The notes beneath the pieces were generated by a model. The model had not been told where the DNA came from and made no database searches. It saw nothing but the letters and a program-made list of their open reading frames with translations. Positions 2,966 to 58,723 of a stretch of 64,000 nt of DNA are shown piece by piece. Position 1 is the stretch's first letter. Each line of letters starts with the position of its first letter. Both the position numbers and the translations under genes were made by a program. The stretch lies in sequence record MG592671.1. One strand, 5' to 3'.

Positions 2966-4134
2966 TGATATCAGATAAAGATTTAGACATCAAAGTAAAA
3001 CGTAATTTTTGTAATTATAGTGGTCATTTAGAAGAAGAATATGAGTACTATGATAGTGTTGATGACCATGGCAAGCATGTTGAGGTTAAGCATGGATACT
3101 ACCACATGTACAGCTCAGATTGTCCCACATTTATACAGAATGACTATATCTACAGACATAACAAACTCCACGGCCACCAAAAAGAATATGAATGGGATTT
3201 CGAAAATCGCTTAGAAGCTGAAGGTGAATTTGACAATGGGGTTAAAGTAGGAGTTCATAAAAGCTACAATTACGTTCGACTTAATAATTTCAACGATGAC
3301 AAAGTCTTTGTTGAAATTAGAATGTGTGCATATGTTAATGGCAAGTTGCACGGAGTTTCTCAGGAGCAACTAGAAGATGGTACTGTTATTAGCGAAGCTA
3401 TCTACAATAACGGCGTTTTAGAGTCTATGTGGGAAAAGGACAGTTCCTCTGGTTATAAATTACTTGATAAAGCTTTTTGTAAACTTGGTAATAAAAAATT
3501 AGGAGCATCGTGGGATAGAGGCGAGCTTACTGCTAAGTGGGAAGCTACGATGGGATGCGACGATTTACATAACGAAGTGTACATTACCAAATATGAAGAT
3601 TACGAGACTGGGCCAGGTGGTAAGAATTTTTTAAGAACGTATGTTGAGTTTGATGAGAACAGCAACGCAACAACTGCCAAGACTTTTTACTCTTCTGGGG
3701 CAATCAACGAAGTATACACTGTGGTTAATAATCCATTTAGAAAGTTGCAAACTTCCCCTACAAATGCAATACACTACCATACTTCACCAGAAAACAGCCC
3801 AGGAGCGCCTTGGTTTGGTAACATCCCATATCTACCAGATGAATTTCGTCGTCAAGGCCTACAGCGAGTCGAGTATTACGAAAATGGAAATGTTAAGATG
3901 GCTAACATGATAGATGGTAGAAAGTTTCTAGGAGAATTTCGCTTTTACGATGCACTTGGTAATCTTGTTGAGCATGCATATTATCATCAAGGACAAGATG
4001 TTACTAATGATGTTCTTGAGATCGCAGAATGTGATACACTTGATGACATTAGTGAGGAAGCTGAGGTTTTTCTAACACTCCAATATGGTGCGTTACTCTT
4101 AACTCCTAAGGAGTTATTATGTCCTCTGAAGTAA
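2965..4134 (+). CDS. MORN-variant/YwqK-like repeat protein
   Basis: Repeats such as EGEFDNGVKVG, YVNGKLHG, YYENGNVK. Confidence 0.6.
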   Translation: MISDKDLDIKVKRNFCNYSGHLEEEYEYYDSVDDHGKHVEVKHGYYHMYSSDCPTFIQNDYIYRHNKLHGHQKEYEWDFENRLEAEGEFDNGVKVGVHKSYNYVRLNNFNDDKVFVEIRMCAYVNGKLHGVSQEQLEDGTVISEAIYNNGVLESMWEKDSSSGYKLLDKAFCKLGNKKLGASWDRGELTAKWEATMGCDDLHNEVYITKYEDYETGPGGKNFLRTYVEFDENSNATTAKTFYSSGAINEVYTVVNNPFRKLQTSPTNAIHYHTSPENSPGAPWFGNIPYLPDEFRRQGLQRVEYYENGNVKMANMIDGRKFLGEFRFYDALGNLVEHAYYHQGQDVTNDVLEIAECDTLDDISEEAEVFLTLQYGALLLTPKELLCPLK

Positions 4135-4463: not shown

Positions 4464-4723
4464 TGAATATTCTTCAAACACAGCATGAAATATGTGTGGA
4501 AGTAAAACACATTACTAAACGATATACTATGAAACACTCATACCGTAGTGTTGACTCGTTGAATATTCCTAGTGAGTGGATAAAAGTTATATACTTGATC
4601 AGCAGTACTGAGTTGTCAGAATACACTGAAGAGCAAATCATAAACGCAGTAAATCTACTGTCAGAAAAATCAAATGTATCTTTACATGTAGACGGTAAGC
4701 GTCTACGTTATAAGAAGGACTAG
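4463..4723 (+). CDS. hypothetical protein
   Basis: TAATG overlap places the start at 4463. Confidence 0.65.
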   Translation: MNILQTQHEICVEVKHITKRYTMKHSYRSVDSLNIPSEWIKVIYLISSTELSEYTEEQIINAVNLLSEKSNVSLHVDGKRLRYKKD

Positions 4724-48869: not shown

Positions 48870-49237
48870 TGGCTGACTTTACTTATGAAGATGCTATAGC
48901 ATCACCTGAGGGCACTACCTTTTGGGTATGTGCTCACTCTCGTAGGGATGTCACTAAGAAAGCACAGCGTTATCAAGAACCACAGCAAGCAGTTGTGGTA
49001 AGTGACGGTGCAGTAATTCGTGGATCGAATTTTCTTGTCCTTCTTAATAACAAGGGCAATATGACCAAGAAGAAAGTCATTCGCACATCTACTTATATCT
49101 ATGATGATAAGGATGAGTGTGCAGCTAGATTCAATGCGTTAAGTATTGAGATTCGAGATCGCTATATGGATTACTCTCGATACGTGGCAGAACAAGCTAC
49201 AGCGCTGAGCAAGCTAATTGACAAATACAGCAAATAA
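48869..49237 (+). CDS. hypothetical protein
   Basis: TAATG coupling. Confidence 0.75.
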   Translation: MADFTYEDAIASPEGTTFWVCAHSRRDVTKKAQRYQEPQQAVVVSDGAVIRGSNFLVLLNNKGNMTKKKVIRTSTYIYDDKDECAARFNALSIEIRDRYMDYSRYVAEQATALSKLIDKYSK

Positions 49238-49460
49238 CGGGATATACTGAAAAGGGCATCTCCGAAGCTATCATCCTAGGAAATGTGGCGATCATTGTTG
49301 TCGGTTATTAGGTATATTCAAGTCTACTCCGAAAGCACGGGCTGACGCGGGAGCGTTGGGCGAAGTAGAGGTTCAATTCCTCTAGCACACTTGATAACAA
49401 ATCGGGAGAGTGTGTTCTGGGTGAAATATTAGGGTGCGAGTCCCTTAAGTAGACGCCCGT
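49237..49460 (+). ncRNA. 224-nt structured RNA with a permuted tRNA-like domain
   Basis: T-arm followed by GCACACT/AGTGTGT hairpin; closed by GTCTACT/AGTAGAC and ACGGG/CCCGT. Confidence 0.6.
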
Positions 49461-52797: not shown

Positions 52798-53817
52798 ATG
52801 AAACATTATACTTATTGGATTATAGATACTGTAAATGCTATGTATTACCACGGTGTTCATAGCGATAATGATCCAGAAAATATCCATCACTACTCTGGGT
52901 CTTCTAAGTCACTGACATCAGCTATTCAACAATACGGAATATCAAATTTTATAAAGAGAGTTGAGCGTTATTTTGATACTAGGGAAGCAGCTAATAAGTG
53001 GGAAGCAACAGTACATAAGCGATTAGATGTAAAAAACCATAATAAATTTTATAACAATAATAATGCATCAGAAGATTTTACTGCCTACAATAAAGTTACA
53101 GTTAGAGATACAAGCGGTAATATATTTTCGGTAGATAAAAATGACAAAAGATATATTAGTGGTGAACTTGTTCATAATAATTTAGGTAAGCACATTGTAA
53201 TTGATTCAAATGGTGATGCGTTTAAAATATTAGCTAGTGATGAAAGATTTGTAAGTGGGGAGCTAAAAGACAGATTATCAGGAAAAGTTATCGTCAAAGA
53301 CGAAAACGATAATAATATTTTAGTAGAAACTACAGATACAAAATATTTAAGAGGTGAATACACCCACATTAATGCTGGTGTGGTAACAGTTAAGGATACA
53401 AACGGAAATACTATGCGGGTTTCAACAGACGATCCTAGATATATTTCAGGAGAGCTTGTTCATCTAACCACAGGGCGTGTGACTGTAAAAGATAAAGCAG
53501 GAAATCACATACAAGTAGACATTGATGATCCAAGAATTGATAATGGCGAGTTTACATATCTACAAGTTGGTAAAGTTCCAGTCAAAGATGAGAATGGTAC
53601 TATATTCCAAGTTGATGCCACTGACCCTAGATATATTTCAGGGGAATTAACACATCATCTTAAGGGGATTTCCAATAGTCACAAAGATAGAATTTGGATA
53701 ACTAATCCTATATTAAAGAAGAACAAGCGCGTTCTTAAAGATGATTTGGATTCTTGGTTACTGAAATCTGATTGGACTAAAGGTCGTAAAACTTACGCAA
53801 AAATAAAGGAATTATAA
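52798..53817 (+). mobile_element. GIY-YIG (Seg-like) homing endonuclease with six ~32-aa repeats
   Basis: HYTYWI...YYHGVH...YSGS; repeats VKD--G----V---DPRY-SGEL; own promoter at 52756. Confidence 0.8.
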
Positions 53818-55067
53818 TGTCTAAAGAAATAAAGAATGTAATAGTACAGCATTATGCTGGTAGCATATCTTATGGCACATCACTTCCTACGAGTGATACT
53901 GATATCCGCGGTATCTTCTGTGCTGGTGAAGAAAATATACGTACGCCGTTCTTTCCTATCCGTGAACAAACACTAGAAGATGAAGAAGATGGTAAGCTAT
54001 ATGAGCTTAGTAATTTCCTTAAGTTATACACTGATGGTAACCCGAATATCCTAGAATCTCTATGGGTAGATGATAGACACATCATTGAAGGTTCAGAAGC
54101 ATACGATATTCTTACTGAACACAGGCAAACTCTGCTGTCTAAAAAGGTTGCATTCACTTATAGCGGCTACGCTATTTCGCAACTACATCGTATCAAAGGC
54201 CACAACAAGTACATCAATAACCCAGCTAAAGAGACGCCACCACGTCAAATTGACTTTGTGAAGCTAGTTCATAACTTTACAGACAAAAAGATCTTTAAGA
54301 TCAATATGGAAGATATCCAAAACGGATACAGGTTAATACCATACGGTGGTGATTTATTTGGTGTTTATGAATCCCCGGGTTCCCAAACATTCGATCACTT
54401 GTTCACATTGAACACTAATTGTGATGCAGATCTAAGTGGCTTCTACACAAAGACTCGAACATTCACAGATAAGATAGCTGGATTCATTACAGGTAATCCT
54501 GATTTTGGAACACGCAAACTCCCACTGTTCATTGTATCGTTTAACCGTGAAGGTTACAAGAAATCAAAAGAGCATTGGAAATCTTACTGGAGCTGGAAGC
54601 GTAATCGTAACGAAGCACGACGTTTGCTTGAAGAAGAAAACGGATACGATACAAAACACGCTCAACATTTGGTAAGACTGCTGAATATGGCTGAAGAAAT
54701 CCTAACTGATGGTATAGTAAAAGTGTTCCGCCCTGATCGAGAATTATTATTAGATATTCGACATGGTAAGTTCTCTTTTGATGAGCTTATGGAAATGGTT
54801 GAAGGTAAGGATGAATACATCCGTGGAGAGTTGTACAAGAAATCTCCGCTACCAAAAGCACCTGATATCAAACTAGCTTCTAAAGTTCTCATAGATGCTC
54901 AAGATTGTTTCTGGAAAGAGCCAACAAAAGAAAAGCGTATTCAGAAAGCCAAAGATCGCATGTTTGATCGTCATCAAAAAGAAGAAGATCGCCGTGAAGC
55001 ACGTTTCTGTGAAAACATGGAACGACTACAAGAAAATCTGAAAGGTGATGATAATGAATCAGAATAG
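53817..55067 (+). CDS. RlaP-like (Nuc-transf) Pol-beta nucleotidyltransferase
   Basis: AGSISYGTSLPTSDTDIRGIF, GNPNILE, YDTKHAQHLVRL. Confidence 0.85.
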   Translation: MSKEIKNVIVQHYAGSISYGTSLPTSDTDIRGIFCAGEENIRTPFFPIREQTLEDEEDGKLYELSNFLKLYTDGNPNILESLWVDDRHIIEGSEAYDILTEHRQTLLSKKVAFTYSGYAISQLHRIKGHNKYINNPAKETPPRQIDFVKLVHNFTDKKIFKINMEDIQNGYRLIPYGGDLFGVYESPGSQTFDHLFTLNTNCDADLSGFYTKTRTFTDKIAGFITGNPDFGTRKLPLFIVSFNREGYKKSKEHWKSYWSWKRNRNEARRLLEEENGYDTKHAQHLVRLLNMAEEILTDGIVKVFRPDRELLLDIRHGKFSFDELMEMVEGKDEYIRGELYKKSPLPKAPDIKLASKVLIDAQDCFWKEPTKEKRIQKAKDRMFDRHQKEEDRREARFCENMERLQENLKGDDNESE

Positions 55068-57132: not shown

Positions 57133-57606
57133 ATGCAAGAGATCGAGCGTAAGTTTTTACCAGCACCTGGTGCAGTAATCCCGTTTACTTCAGATAATGA
57201 AGAAATCATCCAAATGTACATCCATGAAGAAGGCGAAGATACTGTATGTCGTTTACGTCTTATTGATGGCCACAAAGCGTTAATCACTCAGAAAGACAAA
57301 AGTCTAGATGGCGGGTTCTCATGTAATGAGCTTGAATCTCGTATCCCATATCATATAGGGTTAGTGATGTATGATGCGTGTGGTAATCCGCCTATCATCA
57401 AAGAACGTTATCGTATCCCACACGGCGAGTTAACTTTCGAAGTAGATGTATTTTCTGATCACAATAAAGGCTTAGTCCTTATTGAAATCGAAATGCCTTC
57501 TAAAGATACAGTTATCACGTTACCTGACTGGGTAGGCGAAGAAGTAACTTTAGATCCACGTTATAAAAACGTTAATCTAATAAAAAATCCATATGAACTA
57601 TGGTAA
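57133..57606 (+). CDS. CYTH (triphosphate tunnel metalloenzyme) protein
   Basis: QEIERKFL, RLR, K-RY, EVD-F, IEIE, EEVT-DPRYKN. Confidence 0.9.
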   Translation: MQEIERKFLPAPGAVIPFTSDNEEIIQMYIHEEGEDTVCRLRLIDGHKALITQKDKSLDGGFSCNELESRIPYHIGLVMYDACGNPPIIKERYRIPHGELTFEVDVFSDHNKGLVLIEIEMPSKDTVITLPDWVGEEVTLDPRYKNVNLIKNPYELW

Positions 57607-57612
57607 ACTAAT

Positions 57613-57785
57613 TTAAGCAGCAACTCGTGGTAGGGGAATGTAGACCCGCCTTGGGGAATCTAGGAGAGCTCAGAGGATACTTGCGGCACAGTTGAAGAGT
57701 GTTCCCTAATTCACGGGACGTGTAGCCTTAATGGCGAAGTGTAGACTGTTACTGGTTCAAGTCCAGTCCATCGAACGCTGCTTAA
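57613..57785 (+). ncRNA. tRNA-Leu-like RNA, copy 1 (expanded anticodon domain, extended acceptor)
   Basis: TTAAGCAGC/GCTGCTTAA; T-arm ACTGG-TTCAAGT-CCAGT. Confidence 0.6.
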
Positions 57786-57789
57786 TAAA

Positions 57790-57950
57790 ATGAAATACAG
57801 CAACTCGTTGTGGTGAAACTGGTAGACGCGCCTGGTTGGTACCTGCGTTGACTACCCCTGTAAAAAAAGGGGTCATAGACAATGGGACGCCCGGGATCCT
57901 TGTGAAAGGGGAGTGCAGGTTCGAGTCCTGTCTTCGAACGCTGTGTTCAT
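57790..57950 (+). ncRNA. tRNA-Leu-like RNA, copy 2
   Basis: D-arm GTGGTGAAACTGGTAGACGCG, V-arm, T-arm GCAGG-TTCGAGT-CCTGT; shares terminal motifs with copy 1. Confidence 0.65.
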
Positions 57951-57953
57951 ACT

Positions 57954-58063
57954 TGAGAAGATCATAAACAAAATTTGGTACGCGCTTCAGTTGTGAGGTT
58001 CAATTCCTCGAGGTTCTAGGTGACCAACGTCGACGTAGAGGTTCGAATCCTCCTTTTCAACCA
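57954..58063 (+). ncRNA. 110-nt CCA-ending tRNA-like RNA with two T-loops
   Basis: TGAGAAG/CTTTTCA-A-CCA. Confidence 0.6.
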
Positions 58064-58077
58064 AAAAATAATAGGAT

Positions 58078-58500
58078 ATGAGTATGAATCTTAATGAAAT
58101 CGAATTAGTCCCTAAAACTAAAACATTTTATGTTCGTTATACATCCAATCAGACTGGCGTGTATAAAATTGTTGGTACTTCTGAAGAAACATTTAAAAAT
58201 ATTCTTGTTGAACAGCACACAAAAATGCATAGAGCTAAACGATACGTTGATGAGTATCAAACAGAAGTTAACACTGCTCAACGCAAAATGAATAAACTTC
58301 GTGATGATTGTGATTTCACACATTACTACAATCAAGCACAGGATGATCGTAGTAACTATGAATACTACCTGGATCAACAAATGCCAAAATTCAAAAAGGC
58401 AGAAAAAGAATTCAATTTCTATTTTGATCAGATTAATCCAGATGCTGGCGAGTATATTACGCTGATGATGTGTTATGACGCAGAGTGGGTTTTTGAATGA
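58078..58500 (+). CDS. Coiled-coil hypothetical protein
   Basis: SD AGGA. Confidence 0.7.
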   Translation: MSMNLNEIELVPKTKTFYVRYTSNQTGVYKIVGTSEETFKNILVEQHTKMHRAKRYVDEYQTEVNTAQRKMNKLRDDCDFTHYYNQAQDDRSNYEYYLDQQMPKFKKAEKEFNFYFDQINPDAGEYITLMMCYDAEWVFE

Positions 58501-58577
58501 AAAAAGATTTTGCTGAATTGTTTATAGGGTTTGTTTTAGTTATGTTCGCTATAGCTATATTGCTTGAAGTTACGTAA
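58497..58577 (+). CDS. 26-aa membrane microprotein
   Basis: ATGA coupling; single TM. Confidence 0.5.
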   Translation: MKKDFAELFIGFVLVMFAIAILLEVT

Positions 58578-58647
58578 TGTTACGCAATCGTAATAAAATG
58601 TTATAATAATACATAAGCAGTTAGCAACAAGAGCTGCTTAGTAAATT
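58578..58647 (+). promoter_or_regulatory. Promoter plus 5' leader hairpin (duplicated at 59775-59828)
   Basis: TGTTACG-N14-TGTTATAAT; ATAAGCAGTTAGCAAC. Confidence 0.7.
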
Positions 58648-58723
58648 GGGCCTTTAGCTCAGTGGTTAGAGCAGTCGACTCATAATCGATTGGTCCGGGG
58701 TTCAAGTCCCTGAAGGCCCACCA
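58648..58723 (+). tRNA. tRNA-Ile2(CAU)
   Basis: 76 nt, loop CTCATAA; body resembles enterobacterial ileX rather than Met tRNAs. Confidence 0.85.

Follow-up and report, generated by a model that had tools for sequence, protein, structure and literature searches.

The locus and its genomic setting

The window, a stretch of 64,000 nucleotides, matches the genome of Vibrio phage 2.275.O._10N.286.54.E11 (MG592671.1, 348,911 bp), a phage of Vibrio cyclitrophicus, with 100% identity. Positions given here are those of the window, and addition of 124,000 converts them to positions in the record. The phage possesses a tRNA island with 18 standard tRNAs, as predicted by ARAGORN, between 169 and 193 kb of the record. 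An element of 110 nt with two T arms (57954-58063, + strand) lies inside a 470-nt gap of this tRNA and RNA-repair region. The gap is bordered upstream by a gene encoding a CYTH-domain protein (57133-57606) and downstream by an orphan gene encoding a coiled-coil protein (58078/58084-58500). Further upstream in the tRNA island is a gene for an RlaP nucleotidyltransferase of the 'RNA repair pathway' type (53817-55067), and a GIY-YIG gene is likewise located upstream of the element. A gene of the PolyA_pol/CCA-adding type, separate from that for RlaP, is found elsewhere in the phage (record 202383-202751). Genes for RtcB and for Ro/TROVE proteins were looked for across the phage genome, and neither was found.

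The 470-nt gap consists of three tRNA-like units placed end to end, which are unit a' (57618-57782), unit b' (57798-57945) and the two-T-arm element. The spacers across the gap, from the CYTH-domain gene to the coiled-coil gene, are 11, 15, 8 and 14 nt in length, which corresponds to the spacing within tRNA operons, and a search for promoters and terminators within the gap returned none. Units a' and b' (about 150-165 nt) are paralogous in that they have the first ~21 nt and the last 10 nt in common (direct repeats D3 and D5), and their interiors are unrelated to each other. Both units have T arms and poor acceptor pairing that is extended by an outer CAGC/GCUG helix. Unit b' scores 18.5 bits with the Rfam tRNA model as a tRNA with a 52-nt insert, and its D-loop reads GUGAAACUGGUAGA. 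The GC content of the element is 0.45 versus 0.38 for the genome.

Architecture of the element

The element has several traits of a canonical tRNA, namely an acceptor helix, a T arm with a consensus loop, and a discriminator followed by CCA. The 7-bp acceptor and A73-CCA end reported in a preliminary description of this DNA are present: 57954-57960 pairs with 58053-58059 through six Watson-Crick pairs and one G.U, and ACCA follows at 58060-58063. The encoded discriminator A58060 and CCA (58061-58063) form the same ending that is seen in 9 of the 11 tRNAs called by ARAGORN in the window. The 5' strand of the acceptor may be taken as 57953..57960, with U57953 forming an eighth pair with A58060 or serving as the -1 residue for RNase P; the 3' strand (58053..58063) pairs through 58053-58059 or 58054-58060 accordingly. 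When the 157 nt upstream were shuffled, an 8-bp helix with at most one G.U arose in 1.5% of the shuffles. Instead of the G3.U70 pair that confers alanine identity, position 3:70 has A-U in one register and G-C in the other.

The T arm that adjoins the acceptor 3' strand, T2 (58037..58053, + strand; GAGG / UUCGAAU / CCUC), stacks with the acceptor to give 11 or 12 bp depending on the register, and A58037 and C58053 are either unpaired or form an A.C mismatch. Although the arm that had been described as a normal T arm is therefore present, it has only four clean stem pairs in the A73-CCA register, the fifth being A.C. The extra hairpin, T1 (57994..58010, + strand; UGAGG / UUCAAUU / CCUCG), lies 43 nt upstream of T2 and is the better hairpin of the two, with five pairs and a consensus T-loop. 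Both loops contain U54, U55, C56, R57 and A58 and are closed by G53-C61. Among the 35 hairpins of the T-arm type on both strands of the 349-kb genome, 30 are on the + strand between 167 and 212 kb, the tRNA region, which argues that the T1/T2 hairpin motif is not background. The second T hairpin of the preliminary description is real, but its assignment to the place of the anticodon is an interpretation.

An A-rich linker (57961..57993, + strand) occupies the region where a D arm and an anticodon arm would be expected. As had been stated before, there is no D-arm, and a D stem cannot be drawn anywhere in the element. The linker contains a D-loop-like UUGGUA (57975-57980) and an anticodon-loop-like CUUCAGU (57985-57991). 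The spacer between the two T arms (58011..58036, + strand) starts with a third GAGGUUC repeat, the motif occurring at 57995, 58010 and 58038, and these three repeats could be slippage products. Within the spacer, 58018-58026 would supply the 3' strand of a possible central helix, and the palindrome that had been noticed ahead of the true T arm occupies 58027-58036 (+ strand), where a 3-bp mini-hairpin is possible.

The preliminary description also had T1 presented by a central stem (57975-57981 with 58020-58027), a proposal that did not hold up. The complementarity amounts to 7 bp with a bulge, or to 9 bp with two bulges once the acceptor helix, T1 and T2 are forced in the fold. The duplex formed by the flanks of T1 has an energy of -8.7 kcal/mol versus a mean of -9.5 for shuffled flanks, and 1157 of 2000 shuffles were as good, so the stem is not above chance and has no weight as evidence. 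In the unconstrained ensemble its pair probability is at most 0.001. By analogy, the 5' strand of the supposed stem, UUGGUA, may equally be read as a remnant of a D-loop; minimal tRNA-like elements of other phages have UGGU-type linkers where the D arm would be.

The interior of the element can form several mutually exclusive hairpins and has no significant long-range helix. The 5' strand of T1, for instance, has two rival local partners, one being CUUCA in a hairpin with a GUUG tetraloop and the other a weak stem around CUUCAGU. The energy of the whole proposed fold is -18.2 kcal/mol versus -28.6 for the minimum free energy structure, and real tRNAs misfold in such predictions too. Since the folding z-score of the element (-1.6) is within the range of the real tRNAs of the phage (+0.6 to -3.8), the fold is neither supported nor excluded by thermodynamics.

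Comparison with tRNAs and described tRNA mimics

A D arm and an anticodon arm at canonical spacing were not found in the element, and it has no usable anticodon. The Rfam tRNA model (RF00005, threshold 29 bits) gave no match over 57954-58063 even at E-values up to 10, and ARAGORN made no call on the element in its bacterial, intron, mitochondrial-armless and tmRNA modes. The element is a tRNA-derived RNA without an anticodon that has two T arms and a CCA end.

Several described families were considered and rejected. The tRNA-Sec model (RF01852) was the sole member of the clan to match the element, with 16.3 bits against a threshold of 47, over 57990-58061 only and with another, weaker acceptor register; a tRNA-Sec was to be recognized by an 8+5 acceptor/T stack and a UCA anticodon arm. 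A tmRNA is dismissed given that there is no ARAGORN tmRNA call and no G3.U70. A bacterial Y RNA of the YrlA type is dismissed given that the phage lacks a TROVE gene and no Y RNA was among the Rfam matches at E-values up to 10. With regard to an intron-bearing tRNA, no excised internal segment gives back a 5-bp anticodon stem with a 7-nt loop (ARAGORN introns of 0-200 nt). Elsewhere in the phage, ARAGORN called four genes with long inserts (31-48 nt) and one gene with a 5-nt insert. A cis-regulatory reading was also rejected, as the gap contains no promoter or terminator and the acceptor helix leaves the ribosome-binding site uncovered.

By analogy, the element would work most like the acceptor-T minihelix of tRNA biochemistry. 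Acceptor-T minihelices are substrates of RNase P, the CCA-adding enzyme and some aminoacyl-tRNA synthetases, and the element resembles them in that its acceptor and T stem form a continuous stack of 11-12 bp, its T-loop has the consensus sequence and its ACCA end is single-stranded. It differs from the laboratory minihelix in being a natural gene with about 75 extra nt that include the second T hairpin. The YrlA Y RNA and the tRNA-like domain of tmRNA resemble the element in that they are organized around an acceptor-like helix with a T arm and have no anticodon for decoding. YrlA has a closed acceptor end and works with the Ro/Rsr protein, and tmRNA possesses G3.U70 together with the reading frame for its tag. 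D-armless mitochondrial tRNAs are similar to the element in that they have no D stem and a short linker from the acceptor. They keep a normal anticodon arm and decode, however, and the element does not fit the mitochondrial modes of ARAGORN.

Origin and relatives

The homologue search proposed in the preliminary description yielded none for the element in 50,697 phage genomes, IMG/VR or the JGI metagenomes. Searches of the phage genomes with 801 nt and 117 nt (blastn) returned only the phage itself, and the T1...T2 pattern retrieved only unrelated elements from IMG/VR and the JGI metagenomes. The downstream coiled-coil protein likewise returned itself alone from IMG/VR, INPHARED and a set of 5.8 billion proteins. 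The nearest relatives of the CYTH-domain protein are at most 43% identical, and a syntenic element is absent from their loci.

Within the phage, blastn of the element against the whole genome gave matches of T-arm length and nothing longer, and local alignments with the 26 tRNA and tRNA-like genes of the phage were at best no better than genome background. The same applies to two suggestive alignments, one of the 5' linker with an odd tRNA-Trp-like gene and another with a 224-nt RNA (49237-49460), both of which were rejected since they fall within genome background. A recent pseudogene or duplication of a phage tRNA was rejected as well, there being no similarity to a parent beyond the T-arm motif. 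Because no parent or paralogue is detectable in the genome, the element is neither a recent copy of a gene that the genome still has nor a recent rearrangement. The preliminary description had raised the possibility of a recent, unexpressed tandem duplication unique to this isolate. Uniqueness was borne out, but for an isolate without any sequenced relatives; a recent duplication was not, given that T1 and T2 match at 13 of 17 positions and have unrelated flanks, and the region of the element is present in RNA libraries.

Outside its 18 standard tRNAs, the phage genome contains a further 19 T-arm hairpins. For seven of the 19, a 7-bp acceptor partner with no more than one G.U exists, and these include oversized genes of 116, 133 and 146 nt, while a 134-nt tRNA-like gene has an acceptor partner matching at 6 of 7 positions. 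The oversized tRNA-like genes of 133-146 nt with good acceptors are located at record positions 191773-191918, 210988-211121 and 211223-211355. A structured stretch that ends in a T arm (record ~206700-206880) is located directly upstream of the start of an open reading frame that is groEL-like in its first residues.

Double-T-arm genes in other phages

Two T-loops 18-40 nt apart were used as a pattern to search IMG/VR, which gave at least 119 stretches. Membership in a double-T class was defined by two T hairpins 15-40 nt apart that both lie inside a single acceptor pairing, within a tRNA array, and besides the element of the window at least 36 distinct IMG/VR elements belong to it. Among the matches listed (83 distinct), 58 are not callable as tRNAs, 23 consist of a normal tRNA with an orphan T hairpin after it, and two are ordinary type-II tRNAs with a T-like anticodon arm. 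All 20 loci that were compared with Rfam are phage tRNA arrays, in which tRNA was the sole family matched, and some double-T elements pass the Rfam tRNA threshold with inserts of 30-80 nt. Double-T-arm tRNA-like genes are common in phage tRNA arrays. They are architectural parallels and not sequence homologues of the element in the window.

One family of such genes, about 140 nt in length, combines an acceptor and a D arm with two T-loop hairpins and is represented by 49 loci with 32 variants on phage contigs of ~60 kb. Compensatory changes are seen in T2 and in a hairpin located between the two T arms, and the family has no non-tRNA match in Rfam (examples in alignment A1 are L035:1510-1652 and L083:2553-2697). 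The closest analogue of the element among the matches listed is L152:1975-2094 (IMG/VR contig 3300032116_001451), which is located beside a tRNA-Met. Like the element, it is oversized (~117 nt) and has an AU-rich 7-bp acceptor with an adjoining T arm, and it carries a GAGG-UUCAAUU-CCUC hairpin, as in T1, within a 52-nt insert at the anticodon position. In contrast to the element, its D arm is intact, and its insert is closed by a clean stem of 5 bp (CUCUG/CAGAG). The similarity between the two is confined to the T hairpins, whose common sequence was imposed by the search pattern.

The loci retrieved contain other unusual tRNA genes. In phage Thr-UGU, Tyr-GUA-like and Lys-UUU-like tRNA genes (54-60 bits in Rfam; L075:3871-4025, L075:5005-5161, and L101 minus strand at ~2805-2853 and 4651-4700), the anticodon loop is split near position 37 by inserts of 78-95 nt, which are too short for group I introns. 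The inserts of the Thr and Tyr genes are minimal tRNA-like minihelices, each made up of a stem of 8-9 bp, a short linker that contains GG, and a T arm, and the minihelix is kept between two diverged contigs with a variable interior. Right after tRNA-Arg and tRNA-Asp on the minus strand of L097 are mini tRNA-like genes of ~50-55 nt that have no anticodon arm and comprise a 6-7 bp acceptor, a linker of 13-16 nt with UGGU and a T arm, one of them ending in GCCA. On a 179-kb viral contig, a tRNA with a CUA anticodon (amber-suppressor type; L004:3633-3740) lies downstream of a CYTH homologue, with a short open reading frame (3224-3541) between them, and an orphan T-arm hairpin lies 44 nt downstream of its own T arm.

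Presence in RNA libraries

Eight RNA runs from two studies of 2019 contain the stretch or part of it; these are presumably the runs of Yang et al. 2021, Cell Syst. The data are assembled contigs (Logan), in which DNA carry-over is possible and whose ends cannot prove RNA ends. Contigs from four runs of the two studies extend over the element, three of them fully and that of run X5 from 58006 onward only. In study P1, the gap is spanned in full, and with zero differences, by contigs of 1.2 to 12 kb, two of which terminate at the boundaries of a tRNA-Met (58651 at its 5' end, 58719 at its 3' end). For run X5 (study P2), the assembly has a contig that stops at 57678, within unit a', then nothing over 57679-58005, and a second contig that extends from 58006 to 58722, the CCA end of tRNA-Met, before it runs into adapter. 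The contig ends at tRNA-Met fit tRNA-end processing of the same transcript. The edge at 58006 lies within the element, at the base directly following the T1 loop, and coincides with neither of the predicted ends; cleavage at this site, blocked reverse transcription or a coverage artefact could be the cause. No contig breaks were found at the borders of the element, and 58063/58064 is crossed in all four runs.

Interpretation of the two-T-arm element

The reading that we favour, with a probability of roughly 0.4, is that the two-T-arm element is a selected, non-decoding mimic of a tRNA end. Its acceptor, T1, T2 and ACCA are intact and its D stem and anticodon arm are unrecognizable, which argues for selection since neutral decay would degrade all parts alike. 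The intact half of the element corresponds to the portion of a tRNA that RNase P, EF-Tu, T-arm modifiers and the enzymes of CCA addition and repair recognize. Besides this intactness, the mimic is favoured because the gap is tightly packed, RNA-repair genes lie nearby and the same plan recurs in other phages.

How the RNA would be processed and kept stable, what it would bind and how it would benefit the phage we can only infer. The two upstream tRNA-like units, the element and the downstream gene would be transcribed together in one long transcript. Host tRNA end-processing enzymes would recognize the tRNA-like end, with RNase P cutting on the 5' side at 57953/57954 and the 3' end being trimmed to the encoded CCA, which would release an RNA of ~110 nt. 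This RNA may act through proteins that bind the acceptor-T-CCA module and the free T arm. Candidate binders are the CCA-adding-type and RlaP nucleotidyltransferases of the phage, T-arm modification enzymes and EF-Tu, as well as host toxins that attack tRNA 3' ends. The RNA might thus serve as a tRNA-end mimic or decoy in the conflict between phage and host over tRNAs.

Alternatively, the element could be a relic of a former type-II (leucine-like) tRNA that was scrambled by slippage or recombination in the array and is transcribed within the operon without a function. This is a close contender, only a little less probable than the mimic. The three GAGGUUC repeats suggest slippage, and an orphan with no homologue in the databases searched, no D stem or anticodon arm, an interior helix at chance level and an unremarkable folding z-score is what such a history might leave behind. 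The unbroken passage of RNA contigs through the ends of the element and the many other degenerate tRNA-like pieces of the phage, some of which have poor acceptors, are in keeping with it, as is the fact that a bare 7-bp acceptor match was obtained in 5.6% of the shuffles of the 157 nt upstream. Neutral decay, however, is not expected to leave ~50 nt perfect (an 8-bp acceptor, both T hairpins and ACCA) and to erase the rest. The parent sequence is undetectable, so the event would not be recent, and the 470-nt gap is tightly packed. A relic would also have to be reconciled with the recurrence of the double-T plan in other phages, in one family with covariation.

The acceptor-T minihelix could instead be nothing but a processing signal, that is, a site for RNase P and 3' trimming that sets the 5' end of the downstream mRNA, with the excised RNA as a by-product. 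The CCA is 14 nt ahead of the start-codon region of the next gene in a gap that has no promoter, and contigs end at the tRNA-Met at 58651, 58719 and 58722 (the last with adapter), as cutting at tRNA ends would predict. Contigs cross 58063/58064 in four of four runs, however, and punctuation has no need of a second T hairpin or an exact CCA, which makes this account unlikely.

It is very unlikely that the element is an aberrant decoder, in which T1 would be the anticodon arm (CAA) of a tRNA-Leu with a long variable arm or CUUCAGU would be an anticodon loop (UCA). A73 fits leucine identity, and two of the 83 double-T matches listed are type-II tRNAs, including a tRNA-Leu(CAA) whose loop is that of T1; CUUCAGU, for its part, conforms to Y-U-NNN-R-N. 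T1, on the other hand, starts at position 41 and not 27, and position 37 of its loop is U, while the stem around CUUCAGU has four weak pairs that overlap T1. The D stem is lacking, and with it the D-arm core; LeuRS makes use of this tertiary core of the tRNA. The blank results with the Rfam tRNA model and all ARAGORN modes over the element also argue against decoding. An intron-bearing tRNA or a described mimic (tmRNA tRNA-like domain, Y RNA or tRNA-Sec) is the least probable explanation of all, as tRNAs with T-hairpin inserts in the anticodon loop in other phage arrays and the weak tRNA-Sec match of 16.3 bits are outweighed by the failure of any excision to restore an anticodon stem-loop, a tRNA-Sec score far below 47, the absence of a tmRNA call and of G3.U70, and the absence of a TROVE/Ro gene and of a Y-RNA match.

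Implications for phage tRNA arrays

No description of two-T-arm tRNA-like phage RNAs, or of the odd tRNA-like genes of Vibrio phage 2.275.O, was found in the full-text literature searched, and a 2026 preprint on bacterial tRNA mimics deals with other families. Work on the 18 tRNAs of a T4-like vibriophage is cited in a review (PMC13191261). This vibriophage is presumably Vibrio phage 2.275.O, for which the standard ARAGORN count is likewise 18, so that its odd tRNA-like genes were probably left out of that work.

The RNAC and RNAD of T4 (species 1 and 2 RNAs of the T4 tRNA region) have been referred to as 'RNAs of yet unknown functions' (PMC9697503). These RNAs and the Vibrio element are likened by description alone, all being small, non-decoding and located in or beside a phage tRNA cluster; RNAC and RNAD are stable RNAs, whereas the Vibrio element is seen only within long contigs. 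The T4 RNAs are not known to carry two T arms. Since T4, phage tRNA clusters have been known to include small RNAs that do not decode.

Phage tRNAs are weapons against host defences that cut or block tRNAs. The element retains only the parts that serve end-processing, repair and 3'-end-directed enzymes and has genes for RNA repair as neighbours, which makes it a candidate for a decoy or a dedicated substrate, and this idea is directly testable as the phage can be cultured and RNA-seq exists. A broader proposal, that the element belongs to a widespread class of phage RNAs under selection that have the shape of a tRNA, a CCA end that can be charged or repaired, and a second T-arm module in place of the anticodon, is doubtful at present. 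If it is true, the second T module could occupy two T-arm or elbow-binding sites at once or bait enzymes and toxins that act on tRNA ends, and such RNAs would be kept in the tRNA and RNA-repair islands of large phages. The value of the element lies mainly in the class to which it points and in its testability in a culturable phage. That dozens of double-T-arm genes are missed by standard tRNA finders suggests that annotation overlooks a group of RNAs in phages.
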